Positions 35,777 to 43,214 of a DNA stretch of 64,000 bases are shown here, piece by piece. Below the pieces are notes generated by a model. The model was not told the DNA's origin. It searched no databases and saw only the letters and a list, made by a program, of their open reading frames with translations. The stretch's first letter is position 1; each line of letters begins with the position of its first letter. Made by a program: the position numbers and the translations under genes. The stretch is from NCBI GenBank assembly GCA_020184695.1, contig JAANOX010000144.1, forward strand, positions 1-64,000. Reading direction: 5' to 3'. This stretch comes from Histomonas meleagridis 2922-C6/04-290x (Eukaryota > Protista > Parabasalia).

Positions 35777-37358
35777 TTATCCTTGAGAATCTTTTAATTT
35801 TATTATGTCATCACATTTATGATGTTGAATTTTGTTTACAAACAACTGAATAATATCTGCATATTTATTTTCTGATGCTATTATAAGCGCTGTTTTATAT
35901 ATTTGAAAGTAATTCCAAATGTTTATATGAAATATCATATTATTTAAAAATAATTTAAATAAAACAAAGAAATATTTTTAGCATCGATATCAACATTATC
36001 TTGTTCAAGAAGTAATTTAACTATTTCCGTATAACCTTTTGAAGTTGCTTTTATAAGTGCTGTTTTAAATAATTTGAAATATTTTTAAACATTATTTTGA
36101 AATATTCCAAAATGATTAAAATAAATCCAAAATAAAACAAATAAATACTTTTAGCATTAATATCAATTCCTTCTTGTTCAAGAAGTAATTTAACTATTTC
36201 TGTGTGACCTTTTTGAGATGCATCCATAAGTGCTGTTTTGGGTATTTTAAATAATTTTCAAATATTATTTTAAAATTCTAAATTGTTAAGATAAATTTTA
36301 AATAAAACAAATAAATATCTTTAGCATTAATATCAATTCCTTCTTGTTCAAGAAGTAATTTAACTATTTCTGTATGACCATTTTTAGATGCATCCATAAG
36401 TGCTGTATCAAATAATTTAAATAATTTCCAAATTTTATTTTGAAATATAAAATTATTCAAATAAATCCAAAATAAAACAAATAAATACTTTTAGCATTAA
36501 TATCAATTCCTTTTTGTTTAAGAAGTAATTTAACAATTTCTGTGTGACCATTATAAGATGCTAAAATAAGTGCTGTTCCAAATATTTTAAATAATTTCCA
36601 AATATTGTTTTGAAATATTAAATTATTCAAATAAATATTAAATAAAACAAATAAATATCTTTAGAATTAATATCAATTCCTTCTTGTTCAAGAAGTAATT
36701 TAACAATTTCTGTATGACCATTTCTAGATGCAGATATAAGTGATGTAAAAAATAATTTAAATAATTTTGAAATATTATTTTGAAACACTAAATTATTCAA
36801 ATAAATTTTAAATAAAACAAATAAATATCTTTTGCATTAATATCAATTCCTTCTTGTTCAAGAAGTAATTTAACAATTTCTGTATGACCATTTCTAGATG
36901 CAGATATAAGTGATGTAAAAAATAATTTAAATAATTTTGAAATATTATTTTGAAACACTAAATTATTCAAATAAATTTTAAATAAAACAAATAAATATCT
37001 TTAGCATTAATATCAATTCCTTCTTGTTCAAGAAGAACTTTTGTGACTTCAGAATGACCTTGGCGTGTTGCCCAATGAAGCGCTGTTTCATTAATTTTAT
37101 ATTAATTCCAAAAATAAATATTAAACATTCAATCTTCATGAGAAACATATTTACCATTAATATCAAATATTTTTTGTTCGATTTGCCATTTAATAAATGA
37201 TACAAATTCTTTTTGGTATTGAGAAAGCATCAGGTTGTGAAGAAATTTGACACTTTTAAATTTGGCATTTTTTTATTATCTTTGTTTTCTTTTTCAATAT
37301 ATGATCTCCAGTCGGGTAAGAGTTTATATAAAAATATTAGAATTTTTATAAAGTACAT
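35777..37358 (-). CDS. Ankyrin-repeat gene: eight intact ankyrin modules separated by eight non-coding AT-rich spacers (63, 83, 83, 83, 83, 83, 86, 83 nt); 170-bp tandem period
   Basis: Modules such as TALMDASKNGHTEIVKLLLEQEGIDINAK (87 nt). Spacers at 37087-37149, 36917-36999, 36747-36829, 36577-36659, 36407-36489, 36237-36319, 36064-36149 and 35894-35976. Probable ATG at 37358, with one A7 frameshift near 37270. Confidence 0.8.
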
Positions 37359-37769
37359 ATATGTGATAAAAAGTTAATTTAAACATATCTTGATACATTA
37401 TATTTATGGAGAATCGTATTTAGACGTCGTAACGTTCTCAGGGAACGGTTATTTTCCGCGCCAAATGATTTCCTAAAAAAAACCCCGCGTATTTCTTTTG
37501 GGCATATTATCGACCGTTTATTAAAACTAAATACACGATAGAACTTTTTGAACACATTACAGAACGATAAACGATAGAACTAGCCGTCTCAAAAAGTTTT
37601 ATCGTTTAACGGTCGTCGGCCTGGGCTGAACAATGTATTTGATATGAACCGTAAAAATGAACCCAAACCACACTGGCCATCATGGATGCATGCATCTTGA
37701 TAAACATCCATATTTTTTTCCATTTAGTACTCTTATTAAATCATTTGGTTTTTATTTTTTGTTTTAGTA

Positions 37770-40700
37770 CAGCTCGTTGCAATTGATTTTATAAGGTCAG
37801 CAAAACAAAATATCCGAAATTGAGAAGTTTACAAACCGTCTGCAAAACCGATTACTCCTGATGCAAAAGTAAATCCATTGATCTCAAAACAAAGTATCGA
37901 AAAAGTGATGCGTGCAAAACAAAATACCCCTAAGACAAAAGTAAATACCCAATATTGAAAGGTTTACGAACAGGCAGAAAAACAGGGTATCCCGCTAGCA
38001 AAACTAAATATCCAAATTTGAGCAGTTTACAACACAAAATAAGGACATATGGATTTTGATAAATAAATCAATTGTTTTTTAATTATTCATCTAAAGTTTG
38101 TAGGGAATACGACTTAATTCAAGCTGAGTATTGTGAAACAGTCATCAATTAAAATATTTTCACTTCTTTCTGCTTTATTTGTGATGATAATATTTCTCGT
38201 CACTTTTTTAATCATTCAAAAATTCATTGCATGAATTATGCATTATATATAATTTAAATATATATTTACAGAGTTTTATGTGTAATGTACATCAAACGTT
38301 ATATTATACATATTTTACAATTTATTTGATAGTGTAGTAGTCTAATTGATTAGGCTACTTGGGCGGGAAATAGGGACGTTATCTGTCCCCTATTTGGCCA
38401 TTTTTGGTTCGTATCACGGCGTTTTTGTTTTTTCATTTTTATTTAAATTAATCTGAATTTTTTTTTTCATTTTTTAAATTTGTGAATGGTGACTTTATAG
38501 GCATAAAATTTTTTTCATAATAAAATAGAATTCGATTAAGTATTTTGATAGTGATTTCAATTCAAAAATATGGAAAAATGAAGTAAAAACATCAATAAAA
38601 TTTTTCCCTAGCAATTGCTATGATTTCTGATTCATCATCGAATTTAACCACTGTTTTTCGAACTAATTCTTTCCAAATTCCTATTACATTTTCGATTGGA
38701 TTTAAATCTGAAGAATATGCAGCATTATAAACTACTTTGTTCCACTTAACATTTCTTCAGCATGTTTGTGAATTGATGCATTGTCCATCCAAAACACAAT
38801 ATTTTCTGTAAAATGTATTTCTTTGAGTAGATATTTAAGGAAAGCTTCAAATATCTCACCTGTTACAAATCCTCTAATGAAAAACAATATTGCATACCAG
38901 TCGAACTAATTGCGAATAGAGCAGTACCATGTAATCCTTTGATAGTTTCAGAATTTTTCAATCTTAATGATCCTTCACCCCAACCTCTTACATCGACGTA
39001 ACCCACCTCGAATGATGTTTCATCAACACACACCCAATCATATCCTGCTCGAATGTAGGACATGAGTTTATTACATGCCTTTTTTCTTATTTGTTTATTT
39101 TCCGGTGTGTTCGCGGCAGGTGTTCTTTTCTGTGCCTTTTTGATATAAGAACCCGGTAAATTATCATTCATTGCTTTCTTTTAATGTATCACTGAATAGT
39201 AGAAAGACAAATATCTTCATTTTTAGCTTTTTTATAGTCAGCAGCCATTTCTTTTTAATTCATAAAAGGATTTTTCTTGGGAGAAGAAGTTAATATTTTT
39301 CCATATTCGTAATCAATTTGAATCTTCTATCCACCCTTATGAACTTGAGTTATTATATCCTCTCCTGATCGAATTTTTCTCAATAATCTTTTACAATTAT
39401 TAATTCTTATTCCTGTATTAGCAGAATATCATAATACAGTTTGATCATCATGGTAAGTATTGAATAGATCCAATAATTTTTTTCTTTGTTCAATTGTAGT
39501 TCTGACATATAATTTTTTTCCCCTTTCATTTCCATTTGTATTTACTTTTTTCGTTTTATTTGTATTTGAACTTTTTTTTGTTTTTCTGGATGGTGTAAAA
39601 TTGAATTGTACTGCTTTAATTTCTCTGATTGGAACTACTAAACTTCTTAATGAATACGCATTTTCAATATATCTTTGTATATTTTCTTTAACTTTGACAT
39701 TTAATACTTCAAGACTTCCATGTGGAAATGAATTTGTCTCTACTCCATTTTTTGAATTATTAATATCTATTTTTTGAATTGAATTAGTACATTTTTCTAA
39801 CTCCCAAACCATTGGATAAAAATCATCCAAATTTTTTGATTTAACGTAAATTAAACCAACAATACACATTTCATCGAAACTTGGTAATGTTAGTTCATCA
39901 TCAATGTCATTTAAAGAATTGATATGTTTCACACTCGTATCATTAAAATAGTACCATTTGTGATTAATAAGAAGTCAAATTGTATAATGCCCTGGGTTAA
40001 TATTATTTGAATGATATATAACTCCACGTAAAACAAATTTTTTTGTTTTCAAATTATCTAAACTAAATTTAGACATTCTAAGTATTCTATTAATTTTAAA
40101 AGGGCTATTATCAAAATTCCAATTTTGATCTAAAGGTGCAATAGAAAATATTATAATTTTGGAATGAGTTGTGATTAACTTTGTTTCATAAATTTTTTTT
40201 TCTGCTGTTATGTTTTTTGTGTGAAAATATTTTTCTAATAATGGTTTCACACTTTCTTTGCTTTTTTTATTCGAGCATAATGGAATTTCTGAAATAAAAT
40301 AATTTGTCGTATTTGTTTTTAATTTTTCATTTGATTTTTTTGTTCTTTCAACAAAATAAAGTGAAGTGATGAATAAATTTTTGATTGATTTGGGGAGTTT
40401 CTCAATAATTAAATTAAAAATTTCAAAGAAATCTTGCTGACTATTTGAATTAATCGAAAACTCTTCTGACATTGTGTTAATAAAATCGGATAATTCAGTT
40501 GAATAATCTTTTTCATTGTTCAATGTTTCAAATAATTTTTCGAATTTTATTGTAGAACTAAAATCTGATGCAAGTATTTTTTTGATAGTTTCTGAACATG
40601 GAGGACAATGTAATATCATCTGTAAAAAACAATTAAGATAACATGTGTTTCCAAAATTAAAAATACCATTAGGAACATTTTCCAAATTATCATTGGTTCC

Positions 40701-41007
40701 CCAAGTCGATTGTGCAGACGAATTCATTTGTGACATAAAAATTTCAGATAAAATAAAAATACATTAATATTTATTCACAAATATTTAATATTTATTTTTT
40801 TTTGCAAGCTACTTTGTTATGCACGCGTCACTTTTTTGGATATTTACTTTTGCAATTGGGATATTCAGTTTTGCAAACGTCACTTTTTGGCTATTCTGTT
40901 TGTCTGGTTAGCTACTTTGTTTTGAGTAAAGGAGATTTACTTTTGCACGCGTCACTTTTTGAGATATTTAGTTTTGCACACTATATAAAATCAATTGCAA
41001 CGAGCTG
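37770..41007 (-). mobile_element. Tc1/IS630-superfamily DNA transposon, 3238 bp, nested in the outer element
   Basis: TA|CAGCTCGTTGCAATTGATTTTATA ... TATAAAATCAATTGCAACGAGCTG|TA (perfect 24-bp TIRs, TA duplication); inverted subterminal motif arrays; DDE ORF inside. Confidence 0.92.
38590..40736 (-). pseudogene. Decayed USP (peptidase C19) - HTH - DDE transposase ORF
   Basis: Cys box GIFNFGNTCYLNCFLQ, QQDFFE, His box GHYTI*LLINHKWYYFND. The same frame continues into YVRTTIEQRKKLLDLF (HTH-like), then VCVDETS, WMDNASIHK and YSSDLNPIEN. Interrupted by TGA at 39975 and 39429, TAG at about 39330 and three frameshifts. Confidence 0.85.
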
Positions 41008-43214
41008 TACATCTTATTCAATTTTTGGTTCTTGTTTTTTGATTTAGTACATCTTATTTAAACATTTGGTTCTAATTTTTTGATTTGGCATATCTTATTT
41101 GCTCACTTTGCCTCACTTATTCATTTGATACATCTTAATTTGCATTTCGTACGTCTCATCCAACCTTCACTTATTCATATAGACGCATAATTTAATCATT
41201 TTGATACACCCATTTTAGTCATTGTTTACAAAAATTTTTTTAATTTTTGTGAAATTCTTGTTTTATTTTTTGCGTTTATAATCTTTCTTTCATGTGTAAC
41301 TCAAAACTTTTGTGATTTAGTTTTTAATTTCAGCCATTCTCTTTCATATACGTGGTAGGCAGAGGTTGACGACTTTTTCTGTGTGAATATTATTGAATTT
41401 TTTCCAAGGAATTGAACAGATCTGTTTTTAATCTGACCAAATTTGGTTTCAAAAAGTTCACAATGTGATCATTTTGCATTCAAATAGCTACTTCACAAAG
41501 ATTTTTTCAACATTGATGTTGATACTCATCAGGGAATAAAATTATAAAAAAATTTATTTGATGATAAATTATTGTAATATTGAATAAAATAAATTTCTAA
41601 TATTCATAATTTTCTCATATATATTAATACATACTTCGTATATTATTTTCTAACACAATTCTGTTATAATAGAATTTTTATGGGTATAAAATGGCATTTA
41701 TCTCAATTCAATTTTTTTAACTAATTTTGATGGGAGCAATTTGGCATTGCATAAAAAAATTAAATAATTTTAAGAGAATAAACTATTCAATAATTGAGAA
41801 CATAGCGACCGTTACGACGTCTAAATCCGATTCCCCCCCCCCTATATTTATAATGAGATAAACATCAATTTATAACCAACATCAAATTCCTTAATCTTAA
41901 AGTCTGAAATAAAAAAGTGTGATACTATTGTTTTTTTTATATATTTATATTATCTATGATTTGGAAAATTAATTATTTATCGAATTTATTAAAAAAAAAA
42001 TATGATATAAATAAAATAATATTTTAATTTTTATTTATGGTGATATGATTTTTTTTGATAACAGATCGAGTCAAATCATGCTGTTTTCAAAGAAAATTAT
42101 ATTATTTCCTCTATATTAATTCGCCAAAATATTATTTTTTAATGCAACAAGAATAATCACTTTAGTGTCATCAAGTTTAAATTCAATTTAGAATGAAAAG
42201 CCTAATTATGTCATTAAAATAAGCAAAAATGAATATGAAAACAGTAAAAGATTTTTTTAATAATAAAGATGAATGTATCAGCCTGCAACACACATTAAGA
42301 TAACAAAAAATCCATGCACATTAAATTGTCAAAAGTCTTCTAATAATATTCAATGTTCAGAAGAAAACATTATTTTTATTTATCTTTAAGAAATTGATTA
42401 AGATTATGGACCAATAATAAATGGAGATGCACCTCATGGATATCCTCCAGAAAATCCTCCTGAAAATTATCCTAAAGTTGATCCAGAACCAGTTGGGCAA
42501 TATAAACCATAACCTATTGATTGTCCAGAAGAACCCACACCAAAGAGAGAAAGTAAGTTTATAAAGAATTTTTTTTTTGATTTTTGGGATTGTCACTGCA
42601 GTAATTATTATAGAAATTACAAATTCATGGAAATTACAAATCTTATCTGATATATCAGAACCCAACCTTACTTTTCACATTTGATCTCTGAGCGAATTTA
42701 ATTTATTTTCCTTTTCTGCACTTTATAATAGGAAACAATAGATAAGATAAATCCTAACTATATTGTTAAAATAAACATATATCAATTAAGGGCGTCAGAC
42801 CAGATATGTATTAAGAGTATTTTTGTCACAAATCATTATATGTTGGATTTAAATCGATATGAATTTCAAACAATAGTATACTCAACATAATGAAAATGAA
42901 ATATTAAAAATATTCCATGAATTTACACATAAACATGGATATTTATATTTTGCATGGAAAAAATGGTTGAGAGGAATTCAGAAGTCATTCAAATCATCAT
43001 TAACAAAAAATGAGTGAAAAATATCTATTGCATTCAATATTCTCAATATTAGTTTTCCCACAATTATTAATCGAAAATATAATTAAAATATAAAATGTCA
43101 AAACACAATATGATTAAAATATTTATTTAAAATCATATTAAAAATTATTATTTTATTTTCGAGATATTTTCATTTTATATTTAGCTTAGATCTGGTCGGG
43201 CTGAATAACGATAG

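Follow-up and report, generated by a model that had tools for sequence, protein, structure and literature searches.

Can a transposon of the Tc1/mariner type carry a deubiquitinase (DUB) as an integral part of its transposase? The question was raised by a 3,238-bp element at positions 37770-41007 of the window analysed here, i.e. the first 64,000 nucleotides of contig JAANOX010000144.1 in an attenuated-strain assembly of Histomonas meleagridis (GCA_020184695.1). The original prediction, made from the letters of the window, was that of a Tc1/IS630 transposon in which a ubiquitin-specific protease (USP) domain appeared to be fused to the transposase. It was supported by further copies in the genome, by the sense codons that these copies carry at the stops of the window copy and by intact relatives in other organisms. 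The element is very probably a decayed member of the Tc1/mariner/IS630 superfamily with a family-wide USP-DDE_3 fusion shared with open reading frames (ORFs) of Tritrichomonas musculus; the USP would be an active deubiquitinase tethered to the transposase, and the family would be extinct in Histomonas.

Reading frame and domains of the window copy

The element is bounded by perfect 24-bp terminal inverted repeats (TIRs). In the coding orientation, the 5′ TIR lies at 40984-41007 (minus strand) and is paired with the 3′ TIR at 37770-37793 (plus strand). This sequence was matched twice in the window, whereas the shuffles gave an expectation of 0. A TA target-site duplication adjoins both ends (41008-41009 on the upstream side in the coding orientation and 37768-37769 on the downstream side), and beyond the 24 bp a weaker inverted similarity reaches 69 nt. 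The element was assigned to the Tc1/mariner/IS630 superfamily, and not to DD34E Tc1 sensu stricto, because of its TA duplication, its TIRs and its DDE_3 core.

The interior is occupied by one long, decayed reading frame. The minus-strand frame from the ATG at 40736 to 39192 contains 4 stops in 515 codons, whereas the other two frames contain 32 and 63, and in 1,000 shuffles the number of stops averaged 48.7 and never fell below 30. Across the TGA at 39975-39977, an in-frame stop of the USP ORF, the frame is unchanged, and no stop occurs in the 181 codons (39432-39974) that separate the USP domain from the transposase. In-frame stops of the window copy are located at 39975 (TGA), 39429 (TGA), 39327 (TAG), 39255 (TAA) and 39189 (TGA). 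In addition, single base pairs are deleted near 39182 and 38881, 7 bp near 38740 and ~215 bp near 38600-38618; with this last deletion, the final ~35 codons of the transposase and its stop were lost. The window copy is a dead, inert relic, non-autonomous through damage.

All coding features lie on the minus strand. The C19 USP/UCH domain (39837-40736) was delimited with Pfam UCH (PF00443) and by alignment with intact relatives, and is interrupted by the TGA at 39975-39977. Over 39978-40736 the UCH profile was matched with an E value of 1.4e-17 and 64.6 bits (gathering cutoff 23.9). The Cys box (40632-40652), QQD (40431-40439), GHY (39984-39992) and FND (39939-39947) motifs are retained, with the catalytic codons at 40641-40643 (Cys), 39987-39989 (His) and 39939-39941 (Asp). 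The linker that follows (39519-39836) contains a motif conserved in the family (FxHGxIDYxDxR..NL..Y..E.P; here at 39648-39731), which was aligned with the relatives P0044 and P0005-P0047 described below. Only transposon relatives were retrieved by blastp with a piece of this linker (E 2e-8). A Lys-rich stretch (39513-39590) may be a nuclear localisation signal. The probable helix-turn-helix (HTH) DNA-binding region (39192-39518), which includes the stops at 39429, 39327 and 39255, is in the same frame as the USP and aligns with the HTH_32 and HTH_Tnp_Tc3_2 matches of the relatives, which score under the Pfam cutoffs.

The DDE core is now in three parts. Part 1 (38866-39180), with the first catalytic Asp at 39022-39024, is entered after the 1-bp deletion near 39182. 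Part 2 (38735-38881), with the second Asp at 38783-38785, follows the 1-bp deletion near 38881 and matches Pfam DDE_3 over profile positions 53-94 (E 2e-5). Part 3 (38595-38738), with the catalytic Glu at 38691-38693, follows the 7-bp deletion and matches profile positions 108-144 (E 2e-4). The two DDE_3 pieces are collinear on the profile, each singly under the Pfam cutoff. In the Pfam scan of the window copy and relatives, the transposase matched DDE_3 (PF13358) only, with no match to PF01609 (transposase_11). Perfect TIRs with a TA duplication, one long frame running through the TGA, the four USP motifs and an HTH-like segment in the USP frame with the DDE core beyond a frameshift had all been predicted, and each was located. 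The single gene of the family is predicted to encode a protein of ~740 aa composed of an N-terminal C19 USP, a partly conserved linker, an HTH region and a DDE_3 core.

Copies in the Histomonas genome

The genome (281 contigs, 43,133,364 bp) was searched with the TIR. With up to 3 mismatches, 18 matches were obtained, as against 0 for a control pattern. Coding (internal) parts of the element were found at six loci; several more loci hold short derivatives or end fragments. Two copies found by DNA search are nearly full-length (C97:62128-65542, 90% identity; C280:395029-397893, 87% identity), contig C267 holds a truncated copy with the USP end, and the copies of C273 and C261 are internally deleted. 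The USP part is present in C97, C280, C267, C261 and C273. Its reading frame is kept in every copy retaining the 5′ half, and its position is N-terminal throughout. The TIR-matched ends are all flanked by TA and the surrounding DNA differs between loci; they are therefore separate insertions and not segmental duplications. The TA adjoins 16 of the 16 element ends inspected across the genome.

The stops of the window copy are replaced by sense codons elsewhere. The TGA at 39975 corresponds to Leu in C97, C280 and C267 and to Phe in C273, and the TGA at 39429 to Trp (TGG) in C280. In other copies, the TAG at 39327 aligns with Arg, the TAA at 39255 with Leu or Ser and the TGA at 39189 with Arg. 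The transposase part of C97 is one frame with three stops only, and it reaches its natural stop. In a rough majority consensus of the copies, the frame is open for 453 aa, starting at the USP Met and extending into the HTH region. Among the results that would refute it, the original prediction had named copies lacking the USP region (a one-off capture) and a true stop between two genes. The USP was found in the five copies named above, the consensus is open as far as the HTH region, the stops are sense codons in other copies and the relatives described below are single ORFs. Judged from these alignments, the fusion is a trait of the family and not a peculiarity of the window copy.

The number of intact copies in the Histomonas assembly is 0. 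TA-flanked, MITE-like (miniature inverted-repeat transposable element-like) derivatives of 850-1,016 bp, consisting of the two ends only, were found at C55:5190-6039, C96:43953-44902 and C188:100341-101356. A similar internally deleted copy, for which one TIR was found, is present in C146 (end at 218276). The TIR variant of the short derivatives (…GCTTTTATA) is the commonest in the genome. With all copies broken and short derivatives beside them, the family appears to be extinct in Histomonas.

The C273 copy (L001:1525-3115) contains ~1.59 kb of extra DNA exactly at the site of the ~215-bp deletion of the window copy. This stretch has no separate ORF of at least 50 aa, the only listed ORF being the C-terminal piece of the transposase that enters its start. 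It could be another nested element.

Relatives with the same fused protein

An exhaustive HMMER search of 1.84 billion representatives was performed with the 203-aa transposase fragment of C97. It gave 40 matches, including the fused proteins P0005, P0009 and P0021. Further fused proteins (P0044-P0050) were collected, of which P0045 (835 aa), P0046, P0047 and the partial P0048-P0050 were obtained with P0005 and alignment A4 as seeds. The co-occurrence of UCH and DDE_3 that the original prediction proposed to look for was thus found in other organisms, in single ORFs together with HTH_32. UCH, HTH and DDE_3 are combined in these intact relatives within one ORF, 746-1,014 aa in length (UCH 77-153 bits; DDE_3 E 1e-16 to 1e-24). 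In P0005 (797 aa), UCH spans residues 27-281, HTH_32 515-564 and DDE_3 621-754. All three domains are present in P0044 (746 aa) and, with a weak HTH_32, in P0009 and P0041 (~1,000 aa); P0021 (1,014 aa) has UCH and DDE_3, and HTH_32 was not detected in it. Two tandem USP domains precede the transposase in P0009, P0041 and P0021, all from Logan assemblies, with the Cys and His motifs in both.

Transposase identity with the fused relatives of other organisms is 31-57%. When the relatives and the Histomonas fragments were aligned (alignment A3), the USP Cys box, GHY, ND and the linker motif were conserved, as were a KRLYVKT..QR..L..LYN helix and the WVCxDET, WxDNxxxH and SPxLNPIEN motifs. The Histomonas copies and most other members have a catalytic spacing of D-79-D-32-E; the P0044 subclade has D-45-E, with a 13-residue insert. 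In every complete relative, the USP domain is N-terminal and both the Cys/His/Asp of the USP and the D/D/E of the transposase are intact.

Most relatives come from Logan or ENA assemblies; their contigs, at 2.6-4.4 kb, are about one element long. In the P0045 cluster, 19 members are grouped at ≥90% identity, on contigs of ~3.0-3.5 kb, which is approximately the size of the element. It includes two T. musculus proteins, KAK8840828.1 (P0062; 569 aa), named 'USP domain-containing protein', and KAK8865331.1 (P0063; 723 aa), named 'Ubiquitin carboxyl-terminal hydrolase 48'. Both are shortened versions of the 835-aa ORF, are devoid of any transposon annotation and are probably mis-annotated as host genes. 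Elsewhere, metagenome contigs yielded only USP-less transposases (28-35% identity; two inspected ORFs of 425-437 aa), no related locus was found in viral and prokaryote genome contigs, and the ESM Atlas contained no cluster of at least 50 members with the fused architecture.

In a profile search of the PDB, the best match was the USP7 catalytic domain (E 9e-28). An AlphaFold model of P0044, made from a 9-sequence alignment, had an overall pLDDT (predicted local distance difference test) of 59.5; the transposase half was good, the USP half and the linker were poor, and helices were modelled at 398-500 with pLDDT 70-87. A fold search with this model retrieved the Mos1 mariner transposase, which ranked top for the C-terminal half, and USP28, USP7 and USP18.

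Phylogeny and origin of the fusion

When a maximum-likelihood tree was built from the transposase domain, the 12 USP-bearing rows were united with 4 N-truncated ones in one group, with support of 92/87, which is under the threshold taken for strong support (≥95 ultrafast bootstrap and 80 SH-aLRT). All 14 of the 14 USP-less rows fell outside it, and the Histomonas sequence was paired with P0001 (100/100). This grouping of the USP-bearing rows fits one acquisition of the USP, likely followed by diversification, with at least four subclades as the outcome. Divergence is far greater between the USP halves than between the transposase halves. For this reason, the common origin of the USP parts is argued mainly from the architecture, the linker motif and the transposase tree.

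The USP-less sisters (~420-520 aa) come from Monocercomonoides exilis, Blattamonas nauphoetae and Blastocystis (P0008, P0022, P0033, P0039). These are anaerobic gut protists of unrelated lineages. The position of the nearest USP-less sisters in such hosts hints that the transposase lineage may have spread horizontally among gut eukaryotes. It is possible, and is put forward with reserve, that the whole constitutes an undescribed DD32E Tc1/IS630 clade of tritrichomonads and related gut protists, whose one or two active N-terminal USPs would be needed for efficient transposition and whose T. musculus copies would be intact and possibly active.

Proposed function of the USP domain

By analogy with Tc1/mariner transposases, binding to the terminal and subterminal repeats would fall to the HTH region, and excision of the element and its integration at TA to the DDE core. 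The USP half would be an active deubiquitinase tethered to the transposase. Its first-ranked action would be the removal of ubiquitin from the transposase or the transpososome, protecting them from proteasomal turnover. In second place, it could act on ubiquitinated chromatin or repair factors at the donor and target sites, including the excision gap. Such roles have been proposed for other transposons. The VTD domains of Helentrons are biochemically active DUBs, proposed to prevent the degradation of transposition proteins (PMC9741609), and Bao, Kapitonov and Jurka proposed that the OTU and Ulp1 domains of transposons such as Ginger1 act on DNA-repair pathways (PMC2836005). The function suggested in the original prediction, by which the transposase may counter ubiquitin-dependent degradation or chromatin silencing in the host, is plausible and agrees with what has been proposed for other transposon DUBs.

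Several points weigh against the reading of a family-wide fusion with an active, tethered deubiquitinase, besides the tree support given above. Among the dead Histomonas copies, dN/dS ratios (non-synonymous to synonymous substitution rates) were 0.6-1.3 in all regions, values that are near neutral and noisy and by which past selection on the USP is neither shown nor excluded. The Histomonas transposon USP is 30% identical to the T. musculus transposon USP (E 4e-12) and 27% identical to a host USP (E 9e-10), so that a common origin judged from the USP sequence alone is weakly supported. The USP half of the AlphaFold model has a pLDDT of ~50. The fused relatives are presumed to be transposons from their protein sequences.

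Alternative explanations

The alternative that survives best accepts the fusion and changes the role of the USP, which would be a ubiquitin-binding or targeting module (serving, for example, integration at ubiquitinated chromatin) or would act mainly on host silencing or repair factors instead of stabilising its own transposase. Chromatin and repair proteins are among the targets of USP7, the closest solved relative, two USP domains are present in some members of the family, and the repair pathways proposed for transposon OTU and Ulp1 domains point the same way (PMC2836005). The conservation of Cys/His/Asp over USPs that are only 25-30% identical argues for catalysis over mere binding, whatever the substrates. 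We regard this role as rather doubtful, and less probable than that of a self-stabilising deubiquitinase.

Domestication, with a SETMAR-like host gene of which the Histomonas copies would be relics and not selfish elements, is improbable. The T. musculus proteins do carry an ordinary USP annotation, and fusions of host domains with mariner transposases are known as domestications, SETMAR being one case (PMC9062482). The Histomonas ORF, however, lies within TIRs and TA, is multicopy at unrelated sites, is accompanied by MITE-like derivatives and is decayed everywhere. Moreover, the T. musculus-type cluster consists of 19 members at ≥90% identity on contigs of about element size, and no complete relative has lost the DDE triad.

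Still less credible is an element with two genes, one for a USP and one for a transposase, separated by a genuine stop or an intron. Accessory genes are known in some DNA transposons, and the window copy has the TGA at 39975 and four further in-frame stops. Yet other copies have a sense codon at each of these 5 stops, the linker runs for 181 codons without a stop and has a conserved motif, and relatives of 746-835 aa are uninterrupted single ORFs that span both domains. The two-gene reading is contradicted by these results.

That a single Tc1-like copy took up a host USP fragment, as an accident of this locus, has very little left in its favour. DNA transposons do pick up host fragments and Histomonas is rich in host USP genes (at least 11 ORFs of 1,932-2,474 aa), but these host USPs are just 23-30% identical to that of the transposon. 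A one-off capture is refuted by the presence of the USP in C97, C280, C267, C261 and C273, at independent TA-flanked sites, and by the intact fused ORFs of other organisms with 31-57% transposase identity. A variant code with TGA read as Trp, under which the window copy would be intact, was rejected as next to impossible: 3 of the 5 in-frame stops are TGA and that at 39429 aligns with Trp in C280, but the copy also has TAA and TAG stops and has suffered four deletions that shift or truncate the frame, the TGA codons at 39975 and 39189 align with Leu and Arg, and the standard genetic code, which therefore applies, gives open host ORFs of more than 2,000 aa.

The at least 11 giant host ORFs are intronless, and each has a central UCH domain. 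They look like a large paralogous family of host USPs. The one tested (C36:62898-63638; L011:3169-9888, minus strand) matched Pfam UCH with an E value of 8.5e-49.

Subterminal regions and insertion site

The 5′ subterminal non-coding region (40737-40983, minus strand) contains direct repeats of ~21 bp (GATATTTAGTTTTGCA-like). The 3′ non-coding region (37794-38594, minus strand) has its subterminal repeats at 37799-38041 and is kept in the short non-autonomous derivatives. Several copies of the ~21-bp repeat are present in both subterminal regions, in opposite orientation at the two ends; they are probably transposase-binding sites.

The element was inserted into a 41-bp tandem repeat (41007-41100, 2.3 copies), which resumes at 37725-37769. 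The junction between intact 41-bp units resembles the pre-insertion site with a single TA and was used as a proxy for the empty site. The G+C content of the window is ~27%, and tRNA and Rfam scans of the window gave no match.

The transposon is nested. Its outer flanks, 37300-37407 and 41845-41900, directly adjoin each other at many other loci (e.g. C144:114228-114367 and C207:101898-102060), so that 37408-41844 is itself an insertion. This outer insertion is edged by a 30-nt inverted repeat (37408-37437 and 41807-41836, 90% complementary), has partial copies at C69:182529-184942 and C38:3569-5618, and sits within a further repeat family of at least 15 copies.

Significance

Tc1/mariner is the textbook minimal transposon, with two inverted ends, one small transposase and no need of a host-specific factor. 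A lineage that keeps a DUB fused to a Tc1-type transposase would alter this picture. That the fusion was kept through deep divergence (USP halves ~25-30% identical, with intact triads) suggests that ubiquitin control of transposases matters in these protists. The family would add an independent case to the OTU, VTD and UCH domains of Helentrons, the OTU and Ulp1 domains of Ginger1, the Ulp1 of Mutator and the IS5-like transposase joined to C19, and together these cases point to a pressure, general among DNA transposons, to have a ubiquitin or SUMO protease of their own. If the reading is true, no earlier case of a cut-and-paste ITm transposase with an enzyme of the ubiquitin system built into it would exist, and the question of why unrelated transposons acquire DUBs repeatedly could be addressed in a tractable system.

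The interest lies in the family and its intact T. musculus members rather than in the window copy. H. meleagridis is a parasite of poultry and T. musculus a protist of the mouse gut. Since the intact relatives are found in this culturable commensal, their function is testable. Copies of T. musculus are annotated as host USPs (one as 'USP48'), and counts of trichomonad USP genes are therefore inflated by transposon ORFs. In the Histomonas genome paper (Palmieri et al. 2021, PMC8529796), repeats were annotated with a Trichomonas library only, and the USP-transposon family was thus missed.

Comparison with known systems

In the full-text literature, Repbase and Dfam being outside the search, no USP domain was found described in a Tc1/mariner/IS630 element, and no paper or catalogue entry for the family turned up. 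Ubiquitin, mariner and Tc1 are all absent from the text of the 2026 Tritrichomonas foetus genome paper. The background given with the original prediction needs one correction, since C19 USP domains are already published in DNA transposons of other superfamilies (PMC11417382, PMC2836005). A DNA transposon with a built-in DUB is known; in Tc1/mariner/IS630 it was found unreported.

A published parallel is XP_001314237.1 of Trichomonas vaginalis, presented in PMC2836005 as an IS5-like transposase (Pfam transposase_11) fused to Peptidase C19. Like the present family, it combines a C19 ubiquitin hydrolase with a DDE transposase in a parabasalid protist; by its description, it is set apart through its IS4/IS5-type core (PF01609), as against DDE_3 (PF13358) here. 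UCH, OTU and VTD domains have been published in Helitron-like elements, with UCH in HLE2 subgroups (PMC11417382, PMC9741609). These elements (HLE2/Helentron) also carry a deubiquitinase domain stably in or beside the transposition protein, but they are rolling-circle RepHel elements without TIR or TA duplication and not cut-and-paste DDE transposons. Ginger1 has a C-terminal OTU or Ulp1 domain and Mutator-like elements have Ulp1 (PMC2836005). Here again a DDE transposase is fused to, or accompanied by, a cysteine protease of the ubiquitin/SUMO family; the proteases, however, belong to other clans (OTU C85/C64, Ulp1 C48), the transposases to other superfamilies, and the protease of Ginger1 is C-terminal whereas the present USP is N-terminal.

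The catalytic domain of USP7/HAUSP, which was the best profile match among solved structures and among the top folds, shares the Cys box, the His box and the Asp with the transposon USP. The latter is shorter (~290 aa), ~19% identical, lacks the TRAF and UBL domains and is joined to a transposase. With Tc1/mariner/IS630 elements such as Mos1, the family shares the TA duplication, short TIRs, a single ORF, a DDE_3/RNase H-like core and, probably, an N-terminal HTH region. It differs from Tc1 (DD34E) by its D-32-E spacing, or D-45-E in one subclade, in place of 34, and its element (3.2-3.45 kb) and protein (~740-1,010 aa) are larger because of the N-terminal USP, or two of them, and the linker.

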